Below are positions 6,485 to 38,675 of a stretch of 64,000 bases of DNA, piece after piece (the stretch's first letter is position 1; every line of letters begins with the position of its first letter). The notes beneath the pieces were generated by a model, which was given only the letters and a program-made list of their open reading frames with translations, had not been told where the DNA came from and made no database searches. The stretch is taken from positions 62,001 to 126,000 of the forward strand of contig NIVC01000247.1 of the NCBI GenBank assembly GCA_002269645.1, in the 5' to 3' direction. Source of the DNA: Macrostomum lignano (Eukaryota). Both the position numbers and the translations under genes were made by a program.

Positions 6485-6608
6485 AAACGGCGCCAACCCT
6501 TCGTTCATAGCGACGCGTCGGCCGTTCAGGGATTAGCGGAATGGGCGCTCGCGAATTCCCGCTGTGTCCCCCCGGTACAGCCCTGCAGCTAAGTCAAGTA
6601 AGTCAAGG
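6485..6608 (+). mobile_element. Probable 3' tail of a 5'-truncated non-LTR retrotransposon
   Basis: A short reading frame (...AVQGLAEWALANSRCVPPVQPCS*) ends in TAA followed directly by an AAGTC/AAGT repeat tail. It abuts the break in the caspase paralog, and the same 31 nt recur at 18478-18508. Confidence 0.5.
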
Positions 6609-14346: not shown

Positions 14347-17300
14347 TTAATCGCATGCTCTGCTTGGATCGAGGGAGATCTTGCGAGTTGGGTGCCCAGT
14401 AATTTCACCCACCACAAGAACATACTGGTCGCCATCCCTGTAAGGTTTCTTCGCCATGCGCTTGTTAACTCGAACCATGATGCTCATCAAGTCTTCTATC
14501 TTGTAGTACTTTTCAATTAGTTCGCACACTGTTTGAATGAAGTATGAGCCGGTGTTTTCATCTCTAAACGCAACCTGACCGCGGGGAGTGGCGTAAAAAA
14601 TCAGAAAGTCACTGTTAGAAGGATATAGAACCGAAGTTCCCTCGAATCGACCACCTGCATTGTCGATTGTTTCTCTTTTCACCAACAATTCGTCTTTTTC
14701 GAGGCCACGGCAGGCCTGGACAAAGAAAATTTTTGGCTTGCCAGCCAGACTGCTGCACAATTTCGGCTGAAACAGGTTTTTGCAAATGATACAGCGTTGC
14801 AACGAGTTCTTTAGAGTGTTTGGATCAAGTGCAAATAAATCACCTGAAACTTTTTTGTGAGATCGAAAATCTTGCAGGGCTTCCCATCGCTACCGACGAT
14901 GCAGTCTTCGCGACCGTGAGTCATGAGGAAGCAGACAAAAGCGCCATGGCGTTCCAGTTCTTTCCAATTTCTTACACAATCTAAGTAGTTTTCGATCTCA
15001 TCAGCAGTCAGATCCTTCTTGCATACGTCAATGATAAATCCCAGTTTGCTGAAGAGCTCACTGACTCGTTCCACGTCAAACTGCGAGCCTTTACGCTCCC
15101 CCTCGCTGCTGGATTCGAACTTGCTGATGTTAATGATAACGCAGAATCCTTGAGGATTTCTCACCGGATAAAATTCATCGCTGCGACTGCAATACAATTG
15201 AAATTAAGGGCTCAGGTAGATAGCTTAGAAAACCTGTAAAAAGCAGTGCGACAATTTGTGCAGATTTGTCAAATATTTTCACTTATAAAACCGTCTCATT
15301 GCTTGGCATTTTAATAATTTCGGTAGGTAAGTTTTGAAAAAAAAATTGCAGTGTTTTATAAAAGCTTTCGAAATTGTAGATATTCAGGCACAAACCTCGA
15401 ATTTGAGCTGCAATCACTCTCGACAGCAGAGTGTTGATCAACTGCTTGAAGCGACTGTGGGGTGCACTGAGAAGCTTGGCGCATGTAGGCGGCAGGCGGA
15501 CTTCTATATTCGTAGCTGTAGCTGGCACCAGATTCACCACTCCCAGTCTGATACTGTGGTCTGGTAGTCCAGGCATCGTTTTCACGAAAGCTGGAATTTA
15601 GGGACAAGAGACGTATTAACCTGAAATACCATTAATGGACGACCTAATGTTGAATTATGACCGGGAAGTTTCATTTTCACTTATTGACTTGGTGTTTTGA
15701 AATTGCAAAAAAATGACATGGAATAAATTCTGATATACTTTTTTCGGTCTGTTAATCGTCTAATCGCTATTCTTCAGAAGTAATTTAAAAGTCACATAAA
15801 ATATTTCAGATTATGATTATCGAGGGATATTGCAGTGCATTTTTACGTTTTCTGCAAAAGGTATTGAAACTAAACATTACGGGACGAACCTCTCGGTAGA
15901 TAAACTGTCTGTAGTACCGACTTGACCTCTTCTTGTCTGGTACGGTAATTCAGTCCACCAGTCCATATCATGAAATCTAAAAAATTCAAGAAAATAGTAA
16001 AATTTCAAATAGCTAATTAAAAGAATTTATATATCTGATAATTTATCGATAGTTAAAAAATAAATTGGTACAACATGAAACTCACCTACGCAGAAGCTCA
16101 GCCATCTTGTGGCTTCCTTGCTCAGTTGCTAAATCTAGCGCAGTTTTGCCTTCCCGGTTCTTCAGGCTCCAATCGGAACCTGCGTAAAGCAGAATCCAGC
16201 AAACTAATGCTGCGGCATCTTCCTGGGTGCAACAAGCTGCTTGCATAAGGGGAGTCCATTCAAAGCTCATGCAGACATTAGCCTTGGCTCCAGCGGTCAG
16301 CAGTGCGGCGGCTGCCGCAGAATTGCCCTTGTAGGCTGCAATATGCAAAACACTCATCCCGTGTGTATTTGCACACGTGGGATCACACACTTGCAGAAGC
16401 TTCTTCAGAAACGTTTCTTGATTCAGATTCGTAGTATCTGGATTGCTGCGCTGCTGAGGCTGAGCTACATGCATAAACATCAGCGAGAATGTGTTACCCT
16501 GGCTGTTAGGCAAGTCACAGTTAAAGCGGTTCACCTTCTGAACCAACGCTGAGTAGTTTTCATCCTCAAGCAGCTTTTTCATATCCTTTAGCCAGCTTTC
16601 CTGAAAAGACAAATACATTTTTTGGCATCATTGTACACCGCGAACGAATAGGGCACACAGATGACTCACTCACCACAAAATCCGGACCAGTGATGGAGCC
16701 ATTGCAATCGAAAACCAGCCGCATTTCTCTGTGACCGCGAATATAAAAAGGTGGCCTACTATACAATTACGTTAATTAGAAGAAGAACATATTTTTTTAA
16801 CATCTTAGCTAACACGAGCCGTAGATGTACACACAGAGTTACCCCGAAATAAATATTGTACGAAAAAACAAATTGACTGATGATAAGTACAAATGCTCAC
16901 GTACAGCTCAATGTAGCTGGCCAGTCCTGAATGGTCGTTGAGTCTGGCCAGGTCCGATGCTGTCCGACCGCGGTGGTCCTTCAGTCCGAGTAGCCGCGAC
17001 CTCTTCGAGTTTCCGTACGTTGAGCACTCGTTAAACCTGAGCTGCCTCAGCAGATGCAGCAGGTGCTTCGTGCATTTCCAGCTGCCAGCCCGTGCGGCTT
17101 CCATCAGCGGAGTGGCGCCATTCTCATTTTGCAGCCACTTCGCTTCAAATGGAATCAGCGCAAGCACTCGCAGGTTGTCTCGCCGGGCTGCCAAGTGTGC
17201 GGCCGTGTTGCCCGACCGGTCAGTGTCTTTAGGATCTGCGCCCAGCTTATATAAGAGCCAGATGCACTTTTCAGTCTGCACTGAAGTCTCATGAGCGTCG

Positions 17301-17705
17301 GCCACCAGCATGAGGACGGTCCGTTCGGCTGCATCGGTCTTGGTCATGAGCTCTGTAGTTGCCTCGAGCAGTAACTGGCTGAAGTCAGCTTTGATTACCA
17401 GCTGGGAGAGTGCCTTTACAGCATATGTAGACTCCCTGAACCGGCGGAAGAAGAAGAGCTTCTCAGCAACCCCAAAAGATAATAGGCCAGTGAGTCTCCA
17501 TAGCTGAAATTTTAGCATTGCTATCTCGCATTATCACAAAATCATGTCACGTTTCATAAGTATTACAATAAAAAGGGTCGCAAATAAAGTTCTCACAATG
17601 AGATTCGAACTTTATTCGATCTTTAAAAGATTATTACTCGTAGTAACTCACCTCACTGTCGGGGAAGGTTGGGATCGGAGCTGGTTTGGAGAACCAACTG
17701 CCCAT
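14347..17705 (-). CDS. Predicted N-myristoylated ankyrin-repeat caspase (~740-765 aa, 7-8 coding exons)
   Basis: Frame-consistent GT-AG exons: 17705-17652 (MGSWFSKPAPIPTFPDSE), 17503-16905/16901 (ankyrin), optional 16755-16674, 16600-16086 (ankyrin), 15976-15890, 15590-15396 (S/Q-rich linker), 15186-14844 (p20: RKGSQFD, FLMTHG) and 14766-14347 (KPKIFFVQACRG, AFRDENTGSYFIQ). The spliced junction gives the canonical F-x4-C-x2-L-x-GKPK. Confidence 0.88.
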
Positions 17706-18281
17706 TTAGTAGCCACAAGGCTCACTGAAAGCAGACGTACACAGCAGGTAGCAGTGAATTGGTAGGACAGAATGCAACTGTGACAGCCTGAGCCCAATTT
17801 TTTACAAGACTTTCCAGATTTTATAGAGACAAACAATAGCTTAGGTAGGTCTTCGGTGTGATTCAAGTGGCTAAAAATAGCTGACAGTAACAGAAAGTAC
17901 GGAAAGAGTCTGCAGTCAATATATGTTGACTGAGCTACTATTAGTACCCATTTGTGCCTACCAAAGAAACACCTTCATGGAGCGAATGGTAGCCCCTGCC
18001 GACGTAGGCAAACTGCTGACATCACTTAAAGCTCCGTCGCTTGTTCGACAGCGCCTTGGTAGAAGGACTAAATCTGAATAAATTAGTCAGACAAAAGTAT
18101 AAAATTAATTTTCAAGCATTGCAGCGTGCTGGGATGGAATCACAATAATTTTCATACGTTGAGCTATCTTGTGCTCATATAGAACGCCTATATGACTGGA
18201 GTTTACGAAGCCACGTGGTATGTATGTAGAAGCCACGAGCCAATGTTCTATGTAGAATCTAACTTCTAATGGAGCATGATA

Positions 18282-18770
18282 CGAAGGCAACTGCAGCTCG
18301 GTTTGCTCCGGAAACCCGATGCAGAAATTTGGCGGCACATTCCGCAACTCCATATTCTTCCTGAGCTACCCAGGTACCCAGGACACCCAAAATACCTACT
18401 GGCGAGTGAAGCAGTCCAGCCCTCCCGTGACATCCGGTACCCCTTCCGTCTGGCCGGTTGTTGCAAAGTCGGCAGTTCAGCCCTGCAGCTAAGTCAAGTA
18501 AGTCAAGGACTCTGTTCGTGCGTGGCTGAGCTCGAGCGTTTCGGTGACCGACTGGCTCAGTTGATGAGCTGAGCATGGACTCAAGCAAACTGAATTATGA
18601 CCTGTCTTAAAACGCTATCCAAACAGCCACATCCATCTGAAGCAAATAAAAGTTCGGAACAGAGAAGCCTCTTCCTGGCATAACTAACCTTGAGTAATCT
18701 TGTTTATTATTGTTATCCAGACCCTGGCAACGAAGCATTCGTCTGTCAATATTTTAGATTAACGGTAAGC
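18282..18770 (+). pseudogene. 5'-truncated, intron-less WSC-PAN paralog fragment with an internal deletion
   Basis: EGNCSSVCSGNPMQKFGGTFRNSIFFLSYP runs in frame into NTYWRVKQSSPPVTSG. Most of the PAN domain is replaced by a 31-nt filler; the 3' flank is homologous to that of the full copies. Confidence 0.82.
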
Positions 18771-20775
18771 CGACGGATGTCCCGAATACGGGACAAGCAG
18801 CCACTTCTGCTTCAGCCGAAAACTTAGAACTAAGTTCTATGGTCAAAACTGCAGCTGCGCTGCACTGCCGTTGCCGACGGCTGTGTCCCAAAAACGGGAC
18901 ACACTGCTTTACTTTAATTTAAAATAAGTGAAAGTGCTAACAGAACAGAAACAGGATTAGAACAGATAATTTTTTATTGACACCATAGCAACGGAAAGCT
19001 CCTTGTAAGGGTACATTTACTTAAATTTTATTCAAGGGTGGGGACTAAAAGGGGAGCGCGTTAGGAATGGAGAGAGCAAAGTCAACCGGGGGTGTGGAAG
19101 AAAAAACATGAAGACGAGGTCTGTAACAGTCAGTACGGTTGGCTGTGCCAGTTTCTGAAGCACTGGCCTATACAAAGTGCTGGTACTCCCGGACAATCAG
19201 GGCATATGTACACTCTTCTTCGCGATTCGGTTCTCGCTGCACACGCGGCATTGATTGCGCGGCCGAACATGGGCAGCGTTCAATGGAGCTTTGGTCGGCA
19301 AATGCTGTACTGCAGGGCCATCACCTGCCGGTCCGACCGCTGCAGGACGGCCTGCCCTGACAGCGAAATGGCGCCTGCCCCTGCCAGTCTCCACCAAGAT
19401 GCTGACTGCTTTGCGCAGAAACGCCACGAAAGTCTTGGTACCTCCGTTCTGGCGGTAGACGATCCACGAGTTCCGAACCAGAAGCAGCAGCAGGTAAAAC
19501 GCGAGTTTCTGAAACCAGCGCAGCGTTTTCCGGCTGGCCAGGTAGGGGTTCGCTGCCGAATCCATACGGTCCACGCTGCCCATACTCTTCGAGTAGGTGA
19601 CCACTGTCACTGGCTTCGCGATCACCTGCTGCTCGCCTCCCCGACGGACTCGTGGCACGGTCACACAGGCAGCCTGGCCAGCAGTGTCCAGGAGATACAC
19701 GGTCTTTGTTCCGCTGCTCTTCCTGTCCGCTGGATCTTGGCCAAGGGCCCTTCCTGGACATCCGTGCAGTCGTAGAAACGAAGGCAGGAAAGCAGCTGCT
19801 TGAACCTATCTCTCGAGAGGGCATTGGGCATGGACAGAGAGGAGCAATGGAAAACAGGGTCCTGGCTCCAGTAGCTGCTGATCTCCGGCTTTTTGTCCAG
19901 GCCCATCAACAGAACAGCTTCCTCACCTCATCATCTGTACAATCTCTCCAGTTCTTTACCAGCTTCGGCAACTGCTCTTCGTCAGCGCACTCCTCGAATA
20001 TCTTCCACGCCCTACGATTCGTCCAGGTTTTCACGCTTGCAATAATTCCATCAGTGAGGTACAAACTCAGAAACTCCTCTTCGTTTCCATCAGCTGAGCT
20101 TGAGGCCTCCAATCTGGGTGAACCCCTAATGTTCCCAGAAACTCGGCTTCATTCGGCACAGCATCCATTCCAGTCTGAACAAAGTGCCACTCTGGTACAT
20201 CACCAACTTCCTCTGTCTGCATGCCTTCTTCTTCTTCTTCTTCTGCTTCTTCGCCTTCTTCCTCCATAATCTCGTCCTCGATTCTATCTAGCGACTCCAG
20301 CGAGTCGTCATCAGTGAAAATGGCTGCGTATTCGTTTTCAGATTCCATGGCAATAACAACGCGAGTAAGCGCAGCAGCCAGTGAGACAGTAAATATATAG
20401 CTGGAGTGAAAGTGCAGGATAAATAAGAGAGGCTATTTAATTGTAATTGGACAGGGCCCTAAACGAATATATTTAAAAGACATTAAACTAGGGGGGGGGG
20501 AGTGAAGATAACAAAAAAGGGGATGGAACTCGCGACTAAAAGAGGCGAGGTTGAAGAGCCAATCAGAAGGCAGCGAGGGAAACAGATAAAAATAACAAGA
20601 CTGAACTGGACAAAGAAGGGAAAAAACAGTAAACAGAGAGAAGTGCAGATGAAATTAAGAAATGACAGACAGTCGCGACAGAGAGAAACCGGCGGGAAAG
20701 GGGGTGCTGCAGCAGCAACTTTAGCGACTGTCCAATAGTCTATGTCCCGATTTCGGGACAGCCGTCGGCAACAGG
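18769..20775 (-). mobile_element. Internally deleted, frameshifted piggyBac DNA transposon
   Basis: Acidic N-terminus, LMGLDKKP-x-YWS and LSRDRFKQLLSCLRF, then a direct jump to KPVTVVTYSKSMGSVDRMD and a C-terminal Cys-rich domain (CRVC...CPDCPGVPALCIGQCFRNWH, frameshifted). TIR-like GCCGACGG-TGTCCCG-CGGGACA at ~18769-18795, 18877-18901 and inverted at ~20741-20775. TTAA TSDs are not preserved. Confidence 0.9.
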
Positions 20776-20899
20776 GGTGATGCTAAAAGGGGTGATGCAG
20801 AGGAGAGCAGGGGGGAGGAGAGAGGAGAGGGGAGAGTGCAGAGAAGGGCCCTGAGAAGAGATATAAACATTAAGGGGCCAGGTTTCTATTATTGTGAAG

Positions 20900-20977
20900 T
20901 TTAAAATGACCTGAGGGCCGGATAGAGAGGCTTTGCAGGCCGCATGTGGCCCGTGGGCTGGAGTCTGCCGAGCCCTG
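20900..20977 (-). mobile_element. hAT-type MITE terminal fragment
   Basis: GGCCGCATGTGGCCCGTGGGCTGGAGTCTGCCGAGCCCTG end motif. Confidence 0.55.
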
Positions 20978-21384
20978 CCTTACACAGATTTTGTCAAAAC
21001 TGTGCACTGCAGCTTTGCCAACTGGCTTCAATGCCTTACAAAGTGCAGCATTCCGACTGACGACTTTAAAAAATGATTCAGCAAGGATGAATCTAGTAGA
21101 AGATAATTTTGTGTGCTCATTTTTGCAGTTTTTTAGCGTTGGCAATGAAAGAAATATTGAATGTAGAAATATTTTGCTACTATATTTCCGGTATCCCACC
21201 AGCTGGACTGAAGCCTTGATCGCAAGTTTATCAAGCTATGATTCAGGGATAGGTAAGCAAGCAAAATAGTATCAAATTTTTAGCTGCCCCTGTCTTTAAT
21301 GTGCATTCAGATATTTCAATGTCTGAATTTAATTTTGTCGGAACTTCATTAGGTTTAAATTTGATTAGGTCAAAGTTTCACTTG

Positions 21385-21660: not shown

Positions 21661-22510
21661 AAAAAAATCATTAGGTCCAAAATTCTTTATGTTGGACTTT
21701 TACTAGATCGAAACTTTACTAGTGTTATTAAAATTTTACAATTTCTGGAAGTAGTGGTCAGTGGTTTCTATTAGTTGCTTTTTTAACTGCTCCCTCAGAG
21801 TTTGAGTTATTTCTGGCGGTTTATCGCTCCAAATTAATTTTTTAAAGCGTGTGAAACTGAGCACACAGTTACAGCACACGTTTACTTAGACACACTTTGG
21901 CGTGAATAAGACGTACGCTCGTATACCGGAATCTCATGTCGTAATAGCCCTGACTTTCCTATCTTTAACTCTCTCTGTAGCTGAATCGTCCGCCGTGGTC
22001 ACTGGTATCTTGAATCTCAACAACAAGCTGTAAAAAACTTTCTTTACTTGACCCGTAGATCATTGCAGTGGTCCCGCAAATAAATCCAGTCAATCTAAGA
22101 ACTTGCTACTTACCTCATTGTACTGAGGTTTTTTCGAGGATTACAAAAATTATTGTCCTTCCTACTTAATTTCTGCTATACCATGGAGAATGATGTACTT
22201 GGCGATGATGCTATAGGCGAATCCATTTATACTTGTAATAAATTTTGAAAACAAAACGGAGGAAACATTTCTTCAACTCTGAAACATTTGATCAGATTAG
22301 AATTTTGAGTAAAGACAACTTCTGAGTCGACCTACTGTAGAGGCCTGTACGAGCTACTCTAGATCGCTGCTCAATAACTCCTCTGATTGGTTGATAGAGC
22401 GATGCCACTAGAATCTGTTTAATCCTATATACTAAAAACCAGATGCGGAACTGCAGAAGCCGTGATTTCAGAAAACCTCATCTGCTTCAAGCTTCTCTCC
22501 GAGCAGCGAA

Positions 22511-23242
22511 ATACTCAGCCCAGCAGCGGCTCTGTCCGTTCTGTTCTGCGCTGCCCTCCTGCTCACTTGCGTGACCGGCAGGTTTGTCCGCTTCTCCTAC
22601 CTGGGCTGCTACAAAGACTATGGATCACCCAGAGACTTAAATGGGCTCAGTGGAGTCAGCAAGATCGGCGGGTTCAGAGTTGGTGGCAATGGGCGAGTCA
22701 GAAGCACGAAAATGTCACACGAACTGTGCAGCGGAATCTGCTCAATAGGCAGCTTCCTCTACTTCGGTGTGCAGTACGGCAAAGAGTGCTACTGCGGCAA
22801 CTCGTACGGATCCCAAGGCTTGGTGAGCGAAGACAACTGCGGCTCTTCTTGCTATGGAAACCGAAAGCAGAAATGTGGCGACACGTACTGGAACTCTGTG
22901 TTCTCTCTGAGCTACCCAGGTACTTTTTGTCTTTTGCTGTACTGGGCCGTCAGTAAATATGGAAGCATTTTACCAATTTTGTACTTTCGTTCAACTTCAG
23001 TTTCCAACAGCAACACCTACACGGTAGTGAAGCAGTCCAGCCCTCCCGTGACATCCGGTGCCACTTCCGTCTGGCCTGTCGCTGCCCAGTCCGTCGAGGA
23101 CTGCCTGCTCCGGTGCAGCGCCAGAGCCGACTGCCGGGCCGCCGTTTTCTCCGGACAGGAGCTCGCCTGCCACCTGCTGGAGTTCGTGTACCCGCCTGGC
23201 CACCTGAGCGGGCCCGAGTGGACTCTGTTCGTGCGTGGCTGA
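22511..23242 (+). CDS. Secreted WSC + PAN/Apple domain protein, copy 1 (start codon appears mutated to ATA)
   Basis: Signal peptide, then WSC (YLGCY...MSHELCSGIC...YFGVQYGKECYCGN...C...C.GN..QKCG), intron 22920-23000, and a PAN-like exon (SVEDCLLRCSARADCRAAVF...CHL). The position of the paralog ATG reads ATA at 22511-22513, with no upstream in-frame ATG before the TGA at 22463. Confidence 0.8.
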   Translation: MLSPAAALSVLFCAALLLTCVTGRFVRFSYLGCYKDYGSPRDLNGLSGVSKIGGFRVGGNGRVRSTKMSHELCSGICSIGSFLYFGVQYGKECYCGNSYGSQGLVSEDNCGSSCYGNRKQKCGDTYWNSVFSLSYPGTFCLLLYWAVSKYGSILPILYFRSTSVSNSNTYTVVKQSSPPVTSGATSVWPVAAQSVEDCLLRCSARADCRAAVFSGQELACHLLEFVYPPGHLSGPEWTLFVRG

Positions 23243-23932: not shown

Positions 23933-24910
23933 CCAAACTGTATCCGCCCCTCCCAAACTGGATCCGCCTCTCCCAAACTGGATCCGCCTCTTCCAAACTG
24001 GATCCGCCTCTTCCAAACTGGATCCGCCTCTCCCAAACTGGATCCGCCTCTCCCAAACTGGATCCGCCCCTCCCAAACTGGATCCGCCTCTCCCAAACTG
24101 GATCCGCCTCTCCCAAACTGGATCCGCCCCTCCCAAACTGGATCCGCCTCTCCCAAACTGGATCCGCCTCTTCCAAACTGGATCCGCCTCTTCCAAACTG
24201 GATCCGCCTCTCCCAAACTGGATCCGCCTCTCCCAAACTGGATCCGCCCCTCCCAAACTGGATCCGCCTCTCCCAAACTGGATCCGCCTCTCCCAAACTG
24301 GATCCGCCTCTCCCAAACTGGATCCGCCTCTCCCAAACTGGATCCGCCTCTTCCAAACTGGATCCGCCTCTTCCAAACTGGATCCGCCTCTCCCAAACTG
24401 GATCCGCCTCTCCCAAACTGGATCCGCCTCTTCCAAACTGGATCCGCCTCTCCCAAACTGGATCCGCCTCTCCCAAACTGGATCCGCCTCTCCCAAACTG
24501 GATCCGCCTCTCCCAAACTGGATCCGCCTCTCCCAAACTGGATCCGCCTCTCCCAAACTGGATCCGCCTCTCCCAAACTGGATCCGCCTCTCCCAAACTG
24601 GATCCGCCTCTTCCAAACTGGATCCGCCTCTCCCAAACTGGATCCGCCTCTCCCAAACTGGATCCGCCTCTTCCAAACTGGATCCGCCTCTTCCAAACTG
24701 GATCCGCCTCTCCCAAACTGGATCCGCCTCTCCCAAACTGGATCCGCCTCTCCCAAACTGGATCCGCCTCTCCCAAACTGGATCCGCCTCTCCCAAACTG
24801 GATCCGCCTCTCCCAAACTGGATCCGCCTCTCCCAAACTGGATCCGCCTCTTCCAAACTGGATCCGCCTCTCCCAAACTGGATCCGCCTCTCCCAAACTG
24901 GATCCGCCCC
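23933..24910. repeat. 20-bp minisatellite (TGGATCCGCCTCTCCCAAAC)
   Basis: About 48 highly homogeneous units; the long ORFs over it are artefacts. Confidence 0.98.
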
Positions 24911-25964: not shown

Positions 25965-28070
25965 AAACATAAAAGAAGCGCATGTCAAACATAGAAGAGC
26001 AACCATGTCGAACATTAAAGATCCACCATGTCTAACATTAAAGAGCCACCATGTCTAACATTAAAGAGCCACCATGTCGAACATTAAAGATCCACAATGT
26101 CAAACATTAAAGAGCCACCATGTCTAACATTAAAGAGCCACCATGTCTAACATTAAAGAGCCACCATGTCGAATATTAAAGAGCCACCATGTCCAACATA
26201 TCTGTGACTTCATGTCAAACATTGAAGAGCCATCATGTCGAACATAAAAGAGCCACCATGTCAAACATAAAAGGACCACCATGTCAAACATTAAAGAGGC
26301 ACCATGTCAAAAATTCACAGCCACCATGTCTAACATTAAAGAGCCACCATGTCGAACATTAAAGAGCCACCATGTCGAACATTAAAGAGCCACCATGTCG
26401 AACATTAAAGAGCCACCATGTCGAACATTAAAGAGCCACCATGTCGAACATAGAAGAGCCACCATTCCAAACATTAAAGAGCCACCATGTCAAACAAAGA
26501 AGAGCCACCACGTCAAACATTAAAGAGCTACCATGTCAAACATAGAAGAGCTACCATGTCAAACATTAAAGAGCCACTTTTTTAAACAAAAAAGAGACAC
26601 CATTTCAAACATAAAAGAGCCACCATGTCAAACATTAAAGAGCCACCATGTCAAAAATAAAAGAGCCACCATGTCAAACATAGAAGAGAGCCACCATGTC
26701 AGACATTGAAAAGCCACCGTATCAAACATAAAATAGTTACCATTTAGAACAAAAAGAGCCACAATGTCGAACATAAAAGAGCCACCATGAAGAACATTAA
26801 AGAAACACCATGTCAAACATTTAAGAGCCACCATGTCAAACATATATGTGACTTTATGTAAAACATATATGTGACTTTATGTCAAACATTAAAGAGCCAC
26901 CATGTCCAACATAAAAGAGCCACCATGTCAAACATAAAATAGACACCATTAAGAAAATTAAAGAGCCACCATGTAAACATAAAACAGACACCATTAAGAA
27001 CATTAAAGAGCCACCATGTCAAACATAAAACAGACACCATTAAGAACATTAAAGAGCCACCATGTCGAACATTAAAGAGCCACCATATCGAACATTAAAG
27101 AGCCACCATGTCGAACATTAAAGAGCCACCATATTAAACATAAAAGAGTTACCATGTCAAACATTAAAGAGCCACCATGTCGAACATTAAAGAGCCACCA
27201 TGTCAAACATAAAAGAGTCACCATGTCAAACATTAAAGAGCCACCATGTCGAACATAAAAGAGCCACCATGTTAAACATAAAAGAGTCACCATGTCGAAC
27301 ATTAAAAAGCCACCATGTCGAACATTAAAGAGCCACCATGTCAAACATAAAACAGACACCATTAAGAACATTAAAGAGCCACCATGTCGAACATTAAAGA
27401 GCTACCATGTCAAACATAAAACAGCCACCATGTCGAACATTAAAGAGCCACCATATTAAACATAAAAGAGTCACCATGTCAAATATTAAAGAGCCACCAT
27501 GTCGAACATTAAAGAGCCACCATTTCAAACATAAAAGAGTCACCATGTCAAACATTAAAGAGCCACCATGTCGAACATTAAAGAGCCACCATGTCAAACA
27601 TAAAACAGCCACTATGTCGAACATTAAAGAGCCACCATATCAAACATTAAAGAGCCACCATGTCGAACATTAAAGAACCACCATGTCAAACATAAAATAG
27701 CCACCATGTGAAACATATACGTGACTCCATGTAAAACATTAAAGAGCTACCATATCAGACATATACATGATTCCATGTCAAACATATACGTGACTCCATG
27801 TCAAACATTGAAGAGACCCCATGTCAAACATTAAAGAGCCACCATGTCGAACATAAAAGAGCCACCATGTAAAACATATACGTAACTCCATGTCAAACAT
27901 TGAAGCGACACCATGTCGAACATAAAAGAGCCACCATGTTAAACAAAGAAGAGCCCCCATGTCAAACATAGAAGAGCCACCATGTCAGGCATTGAAAAGC
28001 CACCGTATCAAACATAAAAGAGTTACCATGTACGAGCGTAGAACAAAAAAGAGCCACCCTGTTAAACATA
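25965..28070. repeat. 23-bp satellite (GAGCCACCATGTCGAACATTAAA) inside H1
   Basis: About 90 degenerate tandem units. Confidence 0.95.
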
Positions 28071-28163
28071 AAAGATACACAATTTCAAACGTAAAAGTAA
28101 GCGAATTTTAAAGGAGCCGCTATAATGCTAAGGAAATTGTCGCACTAGCTGTTTATTGTCTGG

Positions 28164-28320
28164 TGGATGCTTGCTATCTGGGGGATGCTTGCTATCTGGG
28201 GGATGCTTGCTATCTGGGGGATACTTGCTATCTGGGGGATGCTTGCTATCTGGGGGATGCTTGCTATCTGGGGGATGCTTGCTATCTTGGGGATGCTTGC
28301 TATCTGGGGGATGCTTGCGG
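28164..28320. repeat. 18-bp minisatellite (GATGCTTGCTATCTGGGG)
   Basis: About 8.5 units near the H1 3' end. Confidence 0.93.
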
Positions 28321-28959
28321 TCTTGGGATGATTTCTTTTTGCAATGCACTTCATTTGAGCAGTTTGTCTGTTGTCTTTGTGAAGGATTTTTTGGCTGTCT
28401 TTTTGTTACTTGTAGAGAACAGAGATTCTATCCAGATGTCCCCCATCGGGGGGCGAAGATTGCTAGTCCTATATACTAAAAATGAAAATCTTGCTTGCTT
28501 GCTTGCTTGCTTGTAATCGATTAGAGAAAAAATGGCTTAACCGATTTTAATGAGACTTGCACTGTTCGATCAGAAATTTTCCCGTGACGGTACATGTGTC
28601 TTGGCTAAGAAATTGCTCGATGCTAAAGGCATTAAATACTCGAAAAACATGCTTTTATGCAAAGGTCAAGCAAACTTTTCGACTTGAAATGCATTGTAAG
28701 AATGCTAGAGAAAAAATTGACTGGTTGAATTCTGATTCTGAAATAGATTGCAGCATAACTTGCGTCACAGTATTGAAAATGCAGTGTGGAAGCGTAGCAC
28801 CAGACTTGATTTAGATTGCGTAACCATATTGTCAACTTTATTTGAGACTGATACTGACTTGCCTGGGAAATTGATTATGTCATAACTGCTTCGTGAGTGA
28901 GTGTTGAATTATATAAAAACTACACACTTTTATATAATTCAACACACTACACAAAAATC

Positions 28960-30370
28960 GTAAAAGCGTCATGTAAACAATCATAGAAGCGTCATGTAAA
29001 CAATCATAGAAGCGTCATGAAAAATCATAGAAGCGTCATGTAAACAATCATAGAAGCGTCATGTAAAAAATCATAGAAGCGTCATGAAAAAATCATAGAA
29101 GCGTCATGTAAACAATCATAGAAGCGTCATGAAAAAATCATAGAAGCGTCATGAAAAAATCATAGAAGCGTCATGTAATGAATCATAGAAGCGTCATGTA
29201 AACAATCATAGAAGCGTCATGTAAACAATCATAGAAGCGTCATTTAAAAAATCATAGAAGCGTCATGTAAAAATCATAGAAGCGTCATGTAAAAAATCAT
29301 AGAAGCGTCATCTAAAAATCATAGAAGCGTCATGTAATGAATCATAGAAGCGTCATGTAAAAAATCATAAAAGCGTCATGTAAAAAAATCGTAGAAGCGT
29401 CATATAAAAATCATAGAAGCGTCATGTAAACAATCATAGAAGCGTCATGTGAAAATCATAAAAGCGTCATGTAAACAATCATAGAAGCGTCATTTAAAAA
29501 ATCATAGAAGCGTCATATAAACAATCATAGAAGCGTCATGTAAAAAATCATAGAAGCGTCATGTAAAAATCATAAAAGCGTCATGTAAAAAATCATAGAA
29601 GCGTCATCTAAAAATCATAGAAGCGTCATGTAATGAATCATAGAAGCGTCATGTAAAAAATCATAAAAGCGTCATGTAAAAAAATCGTAGAAGCGTCATA
29701 TAAAAATCATAGAAGCGTCATGTAAACAATCATAGAAGCGTCATGTAAAAATCATAGAAGCGTCATGTAAACAATCATAGAAGCGTCATGTAAAAAATCA
29801 TAGAAGCGTCATATAAAAATCATAGAAGCGTCGTGTAAACAATCATAGAAGCGTCATTTAAAAAATCATAGAAGCGTCATGTAAAAAATCATAAAAGCGT
29901 CATGTAACAAATCGTAGAAGCGTCATGTAAAAAATCATAGAAGCGTCATGTAAACAATCATAGAAGCGTCATGTAAACAATCATAGAAGCGTCATGTAAA
30001 AAATCATAGAAGCGTCATGTAAAAAATCATAGAAGCGTCATGTAAAAAATCATAAAAGCGTCATGTAAAAAAATCGTAGTAGCGTCATATAAAAATCATA
30101 GAAGCGTCATGTAAACAATCATAGAAGCGTCATGTAAAAATCATAAAAGCGTCATGTAAACAATCATAGAAGCGTCATGTAAAAAATCATAGAAGCGTCA
30201 TTTAAAAAATCATAGAAGCGTCATGTAAACAATCATAGAAGCGTCATGTAAAAAATCGTAGAAGCGTCATATAAAAATCATAGAAGCGTCATGTAAAAAA
30301 TCATAGAAGCGTCATGTTAAAATCATAGAAGCGTCATGAAAAAATCATAGAAGCGTCATTTGAAAACTAA
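28960..30370. repeat. 22-24-bp satellite (AAACAATCATAGAAGCGTCATGT) inside H2
   Basis: About 60 tandem units. Confidence 0.96.
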
Positions 30371-31264
30371 TGAAAGTGTCATTTAAAAAATTAAGAAGCA
30401 TCATGGTAGAAAAAAAGAAGCGTCATGTCAGACATGAAGGGTGTCATGGAAAAATTAAATGCAGCTATAATGCTGTGCTGGGGAGAAAAACTGAGACGTC
30501 AAGGCTCTCAGAGAATAACTGGGATTACGGGGGTGGTTTTTCTGAGATGTCAAAGCAAAAGTCAGAAGCTACTTCAAAGTTCATGTACTTTACTCAATTT
30601 TTTTATTGCATTCTTTGTTGGCTCGCCACGGGGGGGGGCGCTGATAGAAGAAGAGTCATGTAAAAAATAAAAGTAGCACTATGTATACATAAAAGAAAAG
30701 TCATGTCGAAGTTAAAAGATTCATTTGGGAATTGCTACGATGTCAAAGCTTGGTGGAAATCGTTATAGTGCTGTGATTCTTAAAGAAGGAATCACTAAAA
30801 TGTCAAGGCTTAGGGGAGAAGAATTGCTGAGATTTCAAGGCTTTATGTTGGGTTAAAGTTAGGTTTAGGTCAGGTGTGGGTTGAGGGTTACATTTTATCA
30901 GGTTTTAAGGTTAGCAGGGGATTTTTCAGATTTCAAGGTTTATGGGCGCCATCGCTGACATGTCAAGGCTTACGGGGGGAATAGCTGAGATGTCAAGGCT
31001 CACGGGGGTATAAATGAGATTTCAAGGCTAAAGTCAGAAGCTACATGTAGTTTATTGAAAACTTTTTATTACATTATTTGATGCCTCCTCAGGGGAGGGA
31101 TCGCTTATAAAAAAAGCGTAATGTAAAAAAATAAAAGAAGCTTCATGTCGAAGTTAAGAGATTCATTTGGGAATCCCTACGATGTCGAGGCTTGCAGGGA
31201 ATCGCTATAATGCTGTAGTAGTGCTATAATGACTCTTAGAGAGAATTACTGAAATTTCAATGCT

Positions 31265-31309
31265 TTAGGGTTATGTTAGGGTTAGGGTTAGGGTTAGGGT
31301 TAGGGTTAG
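31265..31309 (+). repeat. Interstitial telomere-like (TTAGGG)n tract
   Basis: About 7 units within the H2 tail, at the homologous position to 9573-9606. Confidence 0.85.
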
Positions 31310-31693
31310 AAGGTTGACAGATATTTTTAGATTTCCAAGGCTTATTGGGGGCATTGCTGAGATGTCAAGGGGGGAAGTTGATATGTTAAAGCTTGTGGGG
31401 GGGGAATTACTGACATGTCAAGGGTTACAAGGTTTGACAGGAGATTTTTTAAGATTTCAAGGATACATGTAGCTTATTAAAAAAATATGTATTGCATTTC
31501 TTTGGCTCCCCAACGGGGGGCGTAGATTGCTAGTAGCCGACTAAATATTAAATAAATAACATCGTCTCGCCCACTGTGGCTTTCGTCCTTCTTCGTGCAA
31601 CTGCCAAATCATGCATTAAACTCTTACACAGAACTCCTGAAGACTTGATTTTATGAAACCTCAGCTTATCGAGGCTTCACTTTGAGCAGTAAA

Positions 31694-32429
31694 ATGTTCC
31701 GCCCAGCAGCGGCTCTGTCCGATCTGTTCTGTGCTGCCCTCCTGCTCACTTGCGTCACCGGCAGGTTTGTCCACTTCGAATACCTGGGCTGCTATAATGA
31801 CCCCGGGTCACCTAGAGACTTGAACGGACTCACTGGAGTCAGAAAGTTCGGCGGGTTCAGGTTTGATTGTTACGGGGCAGTCAGAAGCACGGAGATGTCG
31901 CACGAGCTGTGCAGCAGCATCTGCTCGGCGGGCGAATTCGCCTACTTCGGTGTGCAGTACGGCAGGGAGTGCTACTGCGGCAACTCGAACGGATCCCATG
32001 GCTTGGTGAGCGAAGGCATCTGCGGCGCGGCTTGTTCCGGAAACCGGATGCAGAAATGTGGCGGCATATACCGCAACTCTGTGTTCTCATTGAGCTACTC
32101 AGGTACGAGCGTACTTTTGTAACTTCATTGCTCAGTAGCGGCAGTCATTACGGAATTATGAGACCACGCACTTTCGTTCAACTTCAGTTTCCGACAGCAA
32201 CACCTACACGGTAGTGAAGCAGTCCAGCCCTCCCGTGACATCCGGTGCCACTTCCGTCTGGCCTGTCGCTGCCCAGTCCGTCGAGGACTGCCTGCTCCGG
32301 TGCAGCGCCAGAGCCGACTGCCGGGCCGCCGTTTTCTCCGGACAGGAGCTCGCCTGCCACCTGCTGGAGTTCGTGTACCCGCCTGGCCACCTGAGCGGGC
32401 CCGAGTGGACTCTGTTCGTGCGTGGCTGA
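31694..32429 (+). CDS. Secreted WSC + PAN/Apple domain protein, copy 2 (intact)
   Basis: ATG at 31694 (MFRPAAALSDLFCAALLLTCVTG signal peptide); WSC exon to 32102, phase-1 intron 32103-32187, PAN exon 32188-32429. Confidence 0.9.
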
Positions 32430-33124
32430 GCTCGAGCGGTGCGGTGACCGACTGGCTCAGCTGATGAGCTGAGCATGCACTCAATCGAACTGTAATGTTC
32501 TGGTTTCAAACGCAATCCACACAGTCCCGAGCAAATATAAATTAAAACAGAAAAACCTCTCCCTGGCATATCTAACCTTGATTATTCTTCGTGTTTATCA
32601 TTGTTCTCCAGACCCTGGCAAAGAGGCATTTGTTGAGAAGTATTTTAAGTCGACACGGTAAATCTTTGTCAGCAAAGCTGAAAGTCGCAAAGCAAATAAT
32701 CAGGCTCCTATTTCACAGCTGCAACAGTTGCAGCACCGTGTGCCGAACTCATTGATTTAAAAGCAAATGTTTTTCAAGCTAGTTTAAATTATGGCCAGAC
32801 AAAATGCATAAACAACAGGATGGGGGGGGGTGAGTGGTTGACAGAAACATACACTTGGATAGATATGAGAGACTTTCCCTTAATGGCGGCCTCCACTTGT
32901 TCTCAGCTTTGGGGTGGCTGTCATCTGTTAGTTTAACACGCCAGTAGCCAGACAAGCAGGTTTCTTCTCTACCCTCATTTTTATATTTTAACGTGTGCTC
33001 ATGCAGGGCGTCGCTACTCGTTTCTTTACTCACCCAAGCAATTGGATGGACAGGCAAATTTTGCAAAAACTGATTCATGTCGTCAAGATTTCTTGATTTT
33101 TTGTCACCAACAGAATCCGCCAAA

Positions 33125-34620
33125 CAGGATCCCCCGAAATTGGATCTATCGAAACTGGGTATCCCGAAACTGGATCTATCGAAACTGGATCCCGCTAAAC
33201 TGGATCCCTCCAAACTGGATCCCCCCGAAACTTCCCCAAACTGGATCCCACCGAAACTGGATCCCCCCGAAACTGGATCCCCTCAAACTGGATCTCCTCA
33301 AACTGGATCCCCTCAAACTGGATCTCCTCAAACTGGATCCCCTCAAACTGGATCTCCTCAAACTGGATCTCCTCAAACTGGATCTCCTCAAACTGGATCC
33401 CCTCAAATCGATCCCCTCAAACTGGATCCCCTCAAATGGATCCCCTCAAACTGGATCTCCTCAAACTGGATCCCGTTAAACTGGATCCCCTCAAACTGGA
33501 TCGTCTCAAACTGGATCTCCTCAAACTGGATCCCCTCAAATGGATCCCTCAAACTGGATCTCCTCAAACTGGATCCCGCTAAACTGGATCCCCTCAAACT
33601 GGATCGTCTCAAACTGGATCTCCTCAAACTGGATCCTCTCAAACTGGATCTCCTCAAACTGGATCCTCTCAAACTGGATCTCCCCAAACTGGATCCTCTC
33701 AAACTGGATCTCCTCAAACTGGATCCTCTCAAACTGGATCTCCTCAAACTGGATCCTCTCAAACTGGATCTCCTCAAACTGGATCCTCTCAAACTGGATC
33801 TCCTCAAACTGGATCCTCTCAAATGGATCCCCTCAAACTGGATCCCCTCAAACTGGATCTCCTCAAACTGGATCCCCTCAAACTGGATCTCCTCAAACTG
33901 GATCTCCTCAAACTGGATCTCCTCAAACTGGATCCCCTCAAATCGATCCCCTCAAACTGGATCCCCTCAAATGGATCCCCTCAAACTGGATCTCCTCAAA
34001 CTGGATCCCGTTAAACTGGATCCCCTCAAACTGGATCGTCTCAAACTGGATCTCCTCAAACTGGATCCCCTCAAATGGATCCCCTCAAACTGGATCTCCT
34101 CAAACTGGATCCCGCTAAACTGGATCCCCTCAAACTGGATCGTCTCAAACTGGATCTCCTCAAACTGGATCCTCTCAAACTGGATCTCCTCAAACTGGAT
34201 CCTCTCAAACTGGATCTCCCCAAACTGGATCCTCTCAAACTGGATCTCCTCAAACTGGATCCTCTCAAACTGGATCTCCTCAAACTGGATCCTCTCAAAC
34301 TGGATCTCCTCAAACTGGATCCTCTCAAACTGGATCTCCTCAAACTGGATCCTCTCAAATGGATCCCCTCAAACTGGATCCCCTCAAACTGGATCTCCTC
34401 AAACTGGATCCCCCCGAAACTGGATCCCCCGAAACTGTATCCGCCCTTCCTAAACTGGTTCAGCCCCAGAAAAACAATCCCGCCCCTCACAAACTGGATC
34501 CGCCCCAAAACTTTATCCGCCACCCCTAGCTGGATCCGCCATTCCCCCCAAAACTGGATCCACTCTCAAACTGGAGGGTCCGCCCTCAAACCAAGCTGGT
34601 TCCACCCCATTCCCCTCCAA
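33125..34620. repeat. 14/15-bp minisatellite (TGGATCCCCTCAAAC / TGGATCTCCTCAAAC)
   Basis: About 95 units with higher-order duplicated blocks; shares the AAACTGGATCC core with the 20-bp array. Confidence 0.97.
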
Positions 34621-34839
34621 ACTCCGCTCCGTCCCACATCTGGATAGGTGAATCATCAATCAGCAGTTTATGACGATAGAGACCAATTTTTTTGTTTGGT
34701 AGAATTTATTGCATATTTTGCCTAATCCGTAATGTCAAAGTCAGTGCCAAAAATGGAAGCGGCTGATTTTTCAAGTTTATTATAAATAATCGTCCTTTAA
34801 CGGTTCTCAGATGTTTCTACTTATCCAAGTGCGCAAAAA

Positions 34840-37755
34840 TCAGTAAGATTTTGCGTCCGCCATCAGCCGCACGAACTTCTCCTTGACTTCGGCAATCACG
34901 TCGTCATAGCCGCTGCTCAAAGCCACCAGCTGCTTGTGGACGAACTCCAAATGGCGAGGATCGCTGCTGAATTCAGCCAGAGCCTTCAGCTCCACCAAGT
35001 CTGCGCCCTGTTGCAGTTCCAGGAACCAGTCCTCGGCGCTGACCTCGTCGCTGGGGAGCAGCTCAAAGCAGAGACTCTTGAAGGCTGCATCAAAGTTAAT
35101 GTAGAAAAACTCAATATGATTTTCTGTTCCGGGAGGAAAAATCTTCTGAGTGAGATTCGGTAGATACGGCAGCTGAAGTCCTTCATCTATGCGGAAAAAG
35201 AATCGCCAAGCTGAGTCGCTGTTCAACAGTTGATGAAGCACCGATGACTTCTCGAACTGAATGCTGCGATTCACTTTTAGCGACTGGGACTTCTGTCTTA
35301 GCAAAGTTGTTCGAGCGGCTTCGAGGTCACCGGCCTTGAGTTGGAGCATGGCTCGGAGGCACTCTCGTGCTGTGCGGGCGCAGTCTGGCAGGCTGTCAAG
35401 AAGCCTCCAGTTGCACTCGTCAGAATCAGCTTCATCGTCAGGCCTCAGCCTGAGTAAAAGCTGAGCAACGCAGTCGTAAAGCTGGTGGTACTCGCCAGCA
35501 AACTGCTCCACAGTGCGCCTGCGTGTCACCCTCTGCAGCGGTATCAGGTTGAACGGATCGAAATTAAAGTCCGCAGTGTCCAGTGTTTTTAATTGGGACT
35601 GAAAGTTGAGCAGATGGTCAGGCAGGCTTTGCGTCACGGTTTTCAGGCAACTTAGCACTTCTTCTTTCGGAGAGGAGTTCTTCTTGAAATACAGCGGAGC
35701 ATCCGGGTAGAAGAAGTGTCTCATGCAGACCCGAGGATCGGATTCCTGGCTGAGGCAGCTTATCAGCAAGTTCAGCGCTTGCTGCACCAGCTCAGTAAAC
35801 TTCTCAGGCTGCCACATGTCGATTGGAGTTCGATGAACCATCAAGAAAATCAGAGTTTTTGCATGGTAAGACTTCAAGCCCTTCACCTGCTTGCTAACGA
35901 CATTCTTTAAAAGATGCTTCACAGTGACGAACAACTGGCCCTCTACTGTGGTGAGACTTCTCATAAACAGGCGCTCGAGGAAAGTCGTGCTGATGCGCAT
36001 CTCGAGCCCGGATTTTCCTGGGCTGGCTGCTCGGATGAGGTGGCACGGATTGCCGGCGCGAAGCTCGTTCAATAAGCTCTCAACCAGGCTCTGCGGCAGG
36101 TGACCTTGACAGCCTGGCTGCAGAACTGGCACATCAGGGTAGCAGCAGCACTGGACCGCAAATACGTAGTCAGTTGCCGGTCTCCGCCGTGACGGCAAGC
36201 AGGTTTCTGCGGTCACAGATGCTGGAATTCGAACAGCAGGAATGATTTGTTGTGGTTCCATGTTACTACTAACTGACTGAGCAACCAAATAGATCCAAGA
36301 ACTTACACGATACGCTGCAAGTCACGTGACCATTGACGAATTCTCCCACCATTTTGTCCGCGACTGACTCCGGAGGGCACTGGCAGAAGCCAGCGATGTG
36401 GCAGCAGTCGGGAGTGATGCGGGTAAAGTCTAAGTCAGAGTCGAAGCCTGTTCGCCCGTTCAAAACTGCGAGATTGTTTCCCCAGCCGTCGCCATAGCTA
36501 CCGGTGAGATGGTGGGGAAGACCGAGGCATTTGGTGCAGATGTCCTCCAATGCGCAAGCGATCTCAGCTTGAAACCGCGCTCTCGGGGCTGTGAACCCTG
36601 CAGCCGTGAGACGATGGCTGAGCTGGTCGCAGTCTCGGGACTGAAGCTCGACTGTAGATTCTTCCGACTCTCCGCGAAGAAGCGATCGAATTCTGAGCAC
36701 AGTCGGATGGTCTCGATAAGAACTCAGACGCTTTAAGCAGGAAGTCATAATTTCAGATCGCTGTGCAGAGTGGACTGACATAGCGCTGAGCAGCAGCCAG
36801 ACTACCTGCTCATTCAGGTACGAGCAGGCGAGTAGCAGCGCTGTTTCTCGGCTGTCATTCACAGCAAAGAGGTCGGCCTTGGCCTCAATAAGCAGCCGAA
36901 CAACCTGGATGTGGCCGTTCTTGGCAGCTGCGTGCAGCGCTCGAGACCCTGCGGCGCATGCCAGATTGACATCCGCATTGGCGTCAATGAGAGCCGAAGC
37001 AACCCCAGCAAAGCCGCACTTCGAGGCTACGTAGAGCGGCGTCTCCCCGGCAGTGTTCGGGACGTTTGGATCGGCGTTGGCGCGAAGCAGGCGCTTCAGA
37101 ACCTCGACGTGATTCTTCAAGGCGGCGTGGCACAGCGGCGTAAAGCCCCTTTTGTTTGGGATGGCCAGGTCAGCGCTGGCACCAATCAGCAGCTCGATGG
37201 AGCCAATCTGGCCCGTATAGGTGGCCGTATTGAGTGGCGTGAGCCCGCTGAACCACATCACGTGATCAACATTGCCGCCGGCCCGCATCAGCGTCTTGAC
37301 AACGTCGGTGAAGCCGGTCTCGGCAGCGATGAACAGCGGAACCGCTCCTAGCGCGTCTTCCGCATCGACTTCGGCACCTGCCCGAAGCAGCCGCTGGACT
37401 ATCGGCAGGTGTCCGTACTCCGATGCCATGTACAGAGCGGTGGCTCCTGTGCTGTCTCTGAGCTCCACAGCGGCTTGAAATTCAAGCAGGAGTTCAACAG
37501 CCTCCACGTGACCGTTCCAGCTGGCTTTCATCAGCGGAGTGACTCCCGCAGAGTTGCCGAGGTCCAGACTGGCTCCAGCTCCGGCTAGCAGCCTCACGAT
37601 GGAGCTAAGACCGCGCTCGGCAGCTAGGTAGAGCGGCGAGCTGCCATCGCCTGTGCGAGAGTCCAGTGGGACGAGGGAGGCCACGAGAGAGCGGACAGCA
37701 GCTCGTTGCCTTCGCAAACTGCTGAGTGCAGCTGCGAGCCTTCTGATGCTTCCAT
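34840..37755 (-). CDS. Ankyrin-repeat (x10) cGAS/Mab-21-like nucleotidyltransferase (cGLR) with a long helical C-terminal extension, ~960 aa; 1-nt frameshift at ~37702
   Basis: ATG at 37755 (MEASEGSQLHSAVCEGN) followed by ten ankyrin repeats. NTase core GSYGDGW...DSDLDF with a third acidic residue in TDYVFAV; Mab-21 C-lobe MRISTTFLERLF, LKSYHAKT, MRHFF. A 34-nt GT-AG intron (36273-36306) joins the two ORFs in frame. Confidence 0.87.

Positions 37756-38137: not shown

Positions 38138-38675
<538 letters not shown>

Follow-up and report, generated by a model that had tools for sequence, protein, structure and literature searches.

When a nucleotidyltransferase (NTase) of the cGAS/Mab-21-like type and a caspase, each preceded by an array of ankyrin repeats (ANK), lie on the same strand of one stretch of animal DNA, do they form a coupled sensor-to-protease module, or are they members of two families that happen to share a neighbourhood? 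The question is raised by a 64,000-nucleotide stretch (contig NIVC01000247.1, positions 62,001 to 126,000), which we call the window, and whose first letter is position 1 of the coordinates given below. We refer to its two genes as ANK-cGLR and ANK-caspase. A coupling of this general kind is known from the cyclic-oligonucleotide-based antiphage signalling system (CBASS) and from the SAVED-CHAT systems of type III CRISPR, where a CD-NTase or a cyclase signals to a caspase-like protease; there, neighbouring genes are transcribed together, and the protease bears a nucleotide-sensor domain, SAVED. A preliminary description of the window proposed that the two genes here might work in a similar way. 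The answer towards which we lean is a different one: the two genes are independent and probably functional members of known families that have expanded in flatworms, they sit in a dynamic, repeat-rich region, and they do not constitute a dedicated two-gene module.

Both genes are encoded on the minus strand, with ANK-cGLR upstream, and the distance from the stop of ANK-cGLR (34840) to the start of the caspase (17518) is 17.3 kb. The preliminary description had given a spacing of about 17 kb on one strand, which for this one window is correct. Short GT-AG introns, microsatellites, satellites and transposon remnants identify the window as eukaryotic DNA.

The ANK-cGLR gene (34840..37798, minus strand) is defined by its open reading frames (ORFs), its splice junction, its Pfam matches and its identity of 35-39% to ANK-Mab21 proteins of the flatworm Macrostomum lignano. 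The minus-strand ORFs 36269-37798 and 34840-36288, which overlap at 36269-36288, are the two halves of the gene. They are spliced through a canonical phase-1 intron of 85 nucleotides (36306-36222; donor TCGT/GTAAGT, acceptor TTCCAG/CA), which leaves one exon from 37798, where the beginning is uncertain, to 36307 and another from 36221 to 34840. The spliced reading frame comprises 957 codons, is free of stops, and is closed by a TGA codon at 34842-34840. The tblastn alignments to six homologous genes of M. lignano are interrupted at one common position within the NTase core, as is expected if they share the position of this intron with ANK-cGLR. About 60 nucleotides past the stop codon, the sequence reads an AATAAA polyadenylation signal (34774..34779, minus strand). 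Since it has both a stop codon and an AATAAA of its own, the gene ends by itself, and its end is not joined to the caspase. A single transcript of cGLR and caspase, whether by fusion or by read-through, was also considered for the window and is ruled out: the stop codon is reached with no donor site before it, and the AATAAA follows.

At its N-terminus the predicted protein carries about ten ankyrin repeats (Pfam Ank_2, E 1.7e-73). After the array, Pfam finds Mab-21_C (PF20266) at 33.2-33.8 bits, compared with a cut-off of 24.1; this lobe alone is recognised, and none of the N-lobe is, which is too diverged for Pfam. The active-site motifs of the N-lobe lie at 36425..36502 on the minus strand, namely GSYGDGWG (36502-36479) and DSDLDF (36442-36425), the latter with the [D]h[D] metal-binding pair. 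The third aspartate of the catalytic triad is placed by the family alignment within ATDYVFAV (36154..36177, minus strand). In the protein these residues are G433-S434, D455-L-D457 and D515, which agree with the pattern of GS, [DE]h[DE] and a downstream [DE]. The residues of GSYGDGWG and DSDLDF are invariant in the family alignment. The third aspartate is kept in P0001, P0003, P0005, P0023, P0027 and P0030, and it is replaced in P0004, P0042 and P0057; overall, the GS / DxD / D triad is common to most members of a large and fast-diverging M. lignano family.

The Mab21 C-lobe is followed by an alpha/beta extension of 272 amino acids (34843..35658, minus strand), which we delimit by an AlphaFold2 model, a Foldseek search and family conservation. 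The extension is modelled with confidence (predicted local distance difference test score, pLDDT, 87.0; predicted template-modelling score, pTM, 0.84) and is conserved throughout the M. lignano ANK-Mab21 family. Its best Foldseek match in the PDB is not significant (E 0.78), and Pfam returns no match to it. Calculation puts the isoelectric point (pI) of the core at 7.2, and that of the core together with the C-terminal domain at 6.0. Nucleic-acid-sensing cGLRs have been reported to have a pI >8.5 (Li et al. 2023, 10.1101/2023.02.22.529553). Because the values for ANK-cGLR fall below that figure, its near-neutral to acidic pI would argue against a nucleic-acid ligand, and we infer a ligand of another kind.

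Which family does this protein belong to? Homologs were sought by representative searches queried with exon fragments of the window and with M. lignano homologs. The window protein is 36% identical to PAA86972.1 of M. lignano over 403 columns (E 2e-74); it is 35-39% identical to many M. lignano paralogs, and no match exceeds 39%. Proteins encoded by the window itself did not turn up in the collection searched. An exhaustive profile search returned 79 representative clusters at E<=1e-30, and all ten of the top matches that were looked up are M. lignano proteins. Together these results indicate a large lineage-specific expansion. For the fold, we modelled the family member P0003, which is 35% identical to the window protein, with AlphaFold2 from an alignment of 41 sequences (pLDDT 89.8, pTM 0.90). 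The model has the bilobal cGAS/Mab21 fold, and its top Foldseek matches in the PDB are cGAS (E 1.8e-7) and Sp-cGLR1. When the family profile is compared with PDB sequences, cGAS chains are found at E 4e-5. A profile comparison with an approximate sequence of human cGAS aligned the C-lobe alone, at 35% probability; it is consequently by the fold search and the motifs that the N-lobe is assigned.

The family has already been sampled by experiment. Ankyrin-repeat fusions are among the cGLR domain architectures of Li et al. (2023, 10.1101/2023.02.22.529553), and M. lignano proteins, including the family members PAA58690.1 and PAA68676.1, appear in the portion of its domain table that we consulted. 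PAA86972.1 is enzyme 89 among the 140 enzymes cloned for the cGLR screen in the same study. None of the active enzymes named in the main text of that paper is from M. lignano, and the portion of its species table that we consulted has no entry for M. lignano.

The second gene of the pair, ANK-caspase (14347..17518, minus strand), has five exons (17518-16901, 16600-16086, 15620-15396, 15186-14844 and 14766-14347) and encodes 706 amino acids. Throughout the model the junctions are GT-AG, the phases are consistent and there are no stops; all four acceptors read TTTCAG or TTGCAG. Exons 1 and 2 encode ankyrin repeats (Ank_2), exon 3 a low-complexity linker of 75 amino acids, and exons 4 and 5 the caspase domain, which Pfam identifies as Peptidase_C14 (E 8.3e-44, 150 bits). 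The nearest solved structures are those of caspase-3/7 (E 5e-33). The active site and the linker between the subunits are encoded at 14659..14924 on the minus strand, with the histidine in MTHGRE (14924-14907) and the cysteine in QACRG (14718-14704). The THG and QACRG motifs align with SHG and QACRG of caspase-3, and the His-Cys dyad is intact. Eleven residues past QACRG, the intersubunit linker contains ETID/N (14673-14659; the slash marks the candidate cleavage), which is a plausible site of self-processing. The closest relatives found for the protein are P0183 (722 aa) and P0184 (788 aa) of M. lignano, which have the same architecture and are 44-45% identical to it in the caspase domain. 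In exons 1, 2, 4 and 5, Pfam detects ankyrin repeats and Peptidase_C14 only, and no nucleotide-sensor domain.

The description of the two proteins given earlier is therefore confirmed: the one is a cGAS/Mab-21-like NTase with an N-terminal ankyrin array (Ank_2, Mab-21_C and the GS / DxD / D motifs), and the other is a catalytically intact caspase with an ankyrin prodomain (Ank_2, Peptidase_C14, THG and QACRG). The statement that there was no prior description of such a pairing fails, however, for either architecture, since both have been published (Li et al. 2023; Horkan et al. 2024).

Having established what the two genes encode, we turn to whether they belong together. The interval between them is taken up by two WSC-PAN genes on the opposite strand, one WSC-PAN pseudogene, the remnant of a transposase and about 4.5 kb of satellite, and the adjacent, co-transcribed arrangement is thus absent from the window. 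The caspase has moreover been duplicated locally without the cGLR. The partial duplicate (3401..6485, minus strand) retains the p10 exon, the p20 exon and part of ankyrin exon 2, and is 92-96% identical in DNA to 14270-16232 (blastn). An in-frame stop (tryptophan to stop, in VRN(stop)KELERHG; tblastn) interrupts it, its p20/p10 intron has gained 1.1 kb by insertion, and most of the ankyrin exons are missing; we conclude that this copy is a pseudogene. A specific kinship between the two ankyrin arrays was considered and rejected: the arrays of the cGLR and the caspase match at about 35 bits and 24-31% identity, no more than either does with unrelated ankyrin proteins, which amounts to generic repeat similarity only.

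The neighbours of related genes give a similar picture. Searching by tblastn and among called genes, we find no caspase within 10 kb of six M. lignano ANK-Mab21 loci (seven genes), and no Mab21 gene within 10 kb of two M. lignano ANK-caspase loci (three genes). Thus, as a check of synteny in M. lignano, co-occurrence of the two gene types within 10 kb is not seen at the eight loci sampled. What M. lignano does provide is evidence that the two families have been fused.

A scan of unusually long family members turned up P0057 (PAA93319.1, 2111 aa), which contains ankyrin repeats, Mab21, a second ankyrin block and a caspase domain, all encoded by a single gene (L009:10001-18307, contig NIVC01000031.1). 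A second such protein, P0042, is encoded at L010:8089-13651 on contig NIVC01002235.1. As modelled it has 1099 aa and comprises Mab21, ankyrin repeats and a caspase domain, and an ankyrin-encoding ORF stands just upstream. In the case of P0042, one uninterrupted exon of 680 codons begins in the Mab21 core, takes in the C-terminal domain and crosses the junction into the ankyrin repeats. Since the junction lies inside a single exon, a merged gene model is excluded for P0042. P0119, a UniRef sequence 89% identical to P0042, likewise joins the upstream ankyrin block to the start of Mab21 and the C-terminus of Mab21 to the downstream ankyrin block. P0042 and P0057 are colinear, with 33.6% identity over 1162 columns that include the junction. 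Because the two proteins are diverged and yet colinear, we take the fused architecture to be old and maintained.

The order of domains in the fusions is the order of genes in the window; that is, ANK-Mab21 and then ANK-caspase, concatenated end to end. Concatenation in the same order is evidence of the classical gene-fusion type for a functional relationship between the two families. The fused Mab21 domains themselves are altered: in both P0042 and P0057 the DxD motif reads DxN and the third aspartate is lost, so that two of the three catalytic acidic residues are gone. Judged by these residues, the fused domains are pseudo-enzymes, unable to signal through a nucleotide. If the fusions reflect how the families cooperate, their degenerate NTase sites favour direct physical coupling over a second-messenger route. 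The genes of the window are, however, not the closest relatives of the fused ones. The window caspase is 27-28% identical to the fused caspases as opposed to 45% to stand-alone ANK-caspases, and the core of the window cGLR is 28-31% identical to the fused Mab21 domains as opposed to 37-39% to stand-alone ones. A homolog search with the ANK-caspase half of P0042 returned so many ankyrin proteins that fused paralogs could not be counted from it. We found no paper that describes a cGLR-caspase fusion, and the consulted portion of the domain table of Li et al. contains no caspase domain. For the proposed sensor-to-protease pathway, then, the outcome depends on the level at which it is asked: the fusions of M. 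lignano support a link between the families, and the 17.3-kb spacing and separate termination speak against a dedicated two-gene module in the window.

The integrity of ANK-cGLR at its 5' end (37600..37806, minus strand) has to be considered separately, and we did so by three-frame translation and by enumeration of introns. The preliminary description let the gene begin at 37755. The ATG at this position is out of frame by +1 with the 957-codon ORF; its frame reads MEASEGSQLHSAVCEGNELLSALS, which resembles an ankyrin N-cap, and reaches a stop after 43 codons. The long ORF, for its part, has an in-frame TGA just upstream, at about 37806, and its first in-frame ATG does not occur before residue 91. 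A small intron that would rescue the ATG at 37755 was sought among all lengths of 25-260 nucleotides. There are 36 candidate GT..AG introns that keep the frame; none has credible donor or acceptor signals, and most of them would delete core ankyrin residues. With no credible rescuing intron, the alternatives are an indel of one nucleotide, either as an error of assembly or as a young frameshift, and an upstream exon that is missing or trans-spliced. Spliced-leader trans-splicing occurs in flatworms.

Against this background, the readings of the locus can be weighed together. Suppose that the cGLR copy has recently been disabled, by a frameshift near codon 25-35 that parts the ATG at 37755 from the ORF. 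The N-cap-like frame that ends after 43 codons would then be the relic of the true start, and this reading would fit the lack of an early in-frame ATG behind the upstream TGA, the failure to find a plausible intron that restores the frame, and the regional turnover of genes by birth and death, of which the caspase and WSC-PAN pseudogenes nearby are products. We nevertheless regard it as quite unlikely: the remaining 957 codons are open and retain all family-invariant residues, the splice sites are canonical, the tblastn breaks coincide in the homologous genes of M. lignano, and the 5' end would be explained equally well if one base of a C-rich run had been misassembled, if there were an exon upstream, or if a spliced leader were added in trans. 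A gene that is intact might still encode no immune cGLR but a Mab21 protein with a non-signalling role, structural or developmental as in MAB21L1, whose acidic residues are vestigial. The recognition by Pfam of just the Mab-21_C lobe, the alignment of the C-lobe alone with human cGAS, and the absence of M. lignano enzymes from those named as active in the main text of Li et al. are all consistent with such a role. Yet most members of this large family, which diverges fast, keep the full triad unchanged, and the paralogs that have lost it (P0004, P0042 and P0057) show that loss is possible, so that its retention elsewhere implies selection for catalysis. The fold search, furthermore, ranks cGAS and Sp-cGLR1 first, PAA86972.1 was in the cloned set of Li et al., and PAA58690.1 and PAA68676.1 appear in the consulted portion of their cGLR domain table. 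We therefore consider a non-signalling role highly improbable.

The independence of the two genes is what we favour, and some points weigh against it. From the fusions it is evident that members of the two families have, on at least one occasion, stood side by side and been expressed together, and their neighbourhood in the window may accordingly be no accident; the M. lignano flanks that we examined (10 kb) are shorter than the 17-kb spacing in the window; the loci whose flanks were examined are a handful (eight); and the ambiguous 5' end leaves the integrity of ANK-cGLR less than fully proven. The opposing reading sees in the pair a flatworm module of death or immunity, split into two genes and independent of STING, in which a sensor of the cGLR family activates the ANK-caspase by recruiting and oligomerising it or by means of a nucleotide that it makes. 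In its favour, both genes lie on one strand with the cGLR upstream and the caspase downstream, which is the domain order of the fusions; the fused protein is an end-to-end join of the two types of gene found in the window; the Mab21-to-ANK junction of P0042 lies within one 680-codon exon, P0119 joins parts of the fusion as well, and the colinearity of P0057 with P0042 makes the fused architecture old and maintained; and cGLR outputs that are independent of STING have been raised by Li et al. (2023, 10.1101/2023.02.22.529553). Nonetheless we hold it to be unlikely. The subfamilies of the window genes are not those of the fused ones, the stand-alone counterparts in M. lignano are unlinked within 10 kb, and a gap of 17.3 kb, filled with unrelated genes and repeats, keeps the pair apart. 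As for a second messenger, the fused Mab21 domains, with DxN and without the third aspartate, lend it no support, and no nucleotide-sensor domain is detected in the window caspase. A wider version of the same idea would posit a macrostomid, STING-independent cGLR-caspase pathway in which Mab21 platforms sense a ligand and recruit or activate ANK-caspases; P0042 and P0057 would be its catalytically dead single-chain form and the window pair its catalytically competent split form. To this version as a whole we would give very little credence.

If the two genes are indeed independent, how might each of them work? ANK-cGLR would be a ligand-gated enzyme that makes a nucleotide second messenger, and its ankyrin array and C-terminal domain would serve as regulatory modules and as modules for the recognition of a ligand or partner. 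ANK-caspase would be a caspase of the initiator type: its ankyrin prodomain would mediate recruitment, induced proximity would activate it, and it would cleave itself at ETID/N. On this reading the two genes form separate transcription units and duplicate independently. Any link between their families would most likely be physical, a sensor of the cGLR family recruiting an ANK-caspase as the M. lignano fusions suggest; a diffusible nucleotide route between the families is less likely than physical recruitment.

The remainder of the window illustrates how dynamic the region is. Between the two genes lie two WSC-PAN genes on the plus strand, both recovered by tblastn: copy A at 22508..23239 (Pfam WSC E 2.9e-15, PAN_1 E 1.5e-6) and copy B at 31682..32426 (WSC E 1.8e-14). 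A third intact WSC-PAN gene is found at 59357-58616 on the minus strand, and a decayed fragment with an in-frame stop at 18265..18486 on the plus strand (tblastn). Among the three intact copies the PAN exon is 96-100% identical in amino acids (100% between A and B), and the WSC exon 72-75%; this contrast suggests either that gene conversion has acted on the PAN exon or that the WSC exon has been under diversifying selection. A minisatellite follows directly 3' of each of the intervening copies, according to Tandem Repeats Finder (TRF): 49 copies of a 20-nucleotide unit after copy A (23933-24908) and 85 copies of a 15-nucleotide unit after copy B (33182-34442). Both arrays are open in several frames, and might encode a repetitive stalk or be non-coding. 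In M. lignano, one gene model of 2381 aa (P0029) combines WSC, ANK, Mab-21_C and a RING finger; it hints at a WSC gene that adjoins an ANK-Mab21 gene in that species.

The interval also contains the remnant of a piggyBac-type transposase (19197..19700, minus strand; Pfam DDE_Tnp_1_7, E 6e-6), of which the C-terminal part only is left, and a stretch of satellites (25981..30428; TRF). The latter consists of 23-nucleotide arrays at 25981-28031 (about 89 copies) and 28953-30428 (about 65 copies) together with a short 18-nucleotide array. The two 23-nucleotide satellites have different units and occupy about 3.5 kb in total, and the second of them recurs at 7926-8811. Long (CAGA)n/(CTGT)n microsatellites at 392-1087 and 38139-38678 flank the region. 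Farther upstream of ANK-cGLR, a DIRS-like retroelement occupies 50878-55561 on the minus strand, with a SAM-like tyrosine-recombinase domain (51656-52591), a reverse transcriptase (52675-54102) and a SAP domain (54173-55561); an ORF with a THAP domain (50878-51366) adjoins the main body of the element (51.6-55.6 kb). Scans of the window with Rfam and for tRNA genes returned no matches.

Four genes on the plus strand encode small, cysteine-rich, single-pass membrane proteins with a CPPGW motif (40288-40863, 42593-43110, 46854-47410 and 61990-62575), with second exons near 41513, 47598 and 63016. With Pfam, the first exons of three of these genes give no match to Lectin_C at E<=0.1, and one joined two-exon product gives none even at E<=1. 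The tandem arrays that had been reported around the pair are thus real as regards the WSC-PAN genes, three of them intact and one decayed. The C-type-lectin-like genes, on the other hand, could not be substantiated; a resemblance in the CPPGW-type motif is all that is left of the likeness, and they lie at 40-63 kb, outside the interval of the pair. The birth-and-death turnover that was said to mark the region is borne out by the caspase pseudogene (3401-6485) and by the WSC-PAN fragment with its stop (18265-18486).

What would follow if the two families do cooperate? Animals would then possess a counterpart of the bacterial logic that joins an NTase to a caspase-like protease, and a cGLR output that bypasses STING. 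The possibility of STING-independent outputs has been raised for cGLRs by Li et al. (2023, 10.1101/2023.02.22.529553). By itself, the window adds one further member to each of two described flatworm gene families, and it extends the ankyrin-prodomain caspases, published for parasitic species only, to free-living flatworms. More useful are the two genes of M. lignano in which ANK-Mab21 and ANK-caspase are fused. This species is a laboratory flatworm in which genes can be knocked down and transgenes introduced, so that the link between the families can be tested there.

It remains to compare the two genes with the systems that they most resemble. CBASS and SAVED-CHAT share with the logic once proposed for the window the pairing of an NTase sensor with an effector of the caspase fold; they differ in that the window genes are far apart and separately terminated, and in that the prodomain of the window caspase consists of ankyrin repeats only. 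The M. lignano fusions are closer, since they combine the same two gene types in the same order on one strand. They are, however, one ORF each rather than separate genes 17 kb apart, their Mab21 domain is a pseudo-enzyme, and their parts belong to other subfamilies (27-31% identity).

For ANK-cGLR, the best-characterised relatives are cGAS and Sp-cGLR1 (PDB 4k97, 6ct9 and 8gjy), the latter a coral enzyme. The model of the flatworm family shares their bilobal Mab21 fold (Foldseek E 1.8e-7 to 4.7e-6, target-normalised TM-score about 0.5), and it has in common with them the catalytic triad and the C-lobe motif R-x-S-[FT]-[ST]-x-x-E. Sequence identity between them is nevertheless 10-16%, and the loop from GS to DxD is longer in the flatworm family. 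What sets the window protein apart from these enzymes is its additional ankyrin array, its C-terminal domain of some 270 amino acids without a counterpart in the PDB, and its core, which has a pI of about 7 and is not basic. Its likeness to the M. lignano ANK-cGLRs (PAA86972.1 and PAA45980.1, for example) is much more complete: they have an ankyrin array, an NTase with GS / DxD / D, the same C-terminal extension, and a tblastn break in the NTase core at the place of the window intron.

The caspase, finally, finds its counterpart in the ankyrin-prodomain caspases of platyhelminths, reported by Horkan et al. (2024, PMC11463336) as a clade specific to that phylum, first identified in Schistosoma and confined to parasitic species. 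As in that clade, the place of CARD or DED ahead of the caspase domain, itself catalytically intact, is taken by an ankyrin prodomain. The likeness is one of architecture, and, unlike the published clade, the architecture is present here in the window and in free-living M. lignano (P0183 and P0184), where ankyrin-prodomain caspases are encoded in tandem at L004:1-12848 and again at L005:10001-12797.

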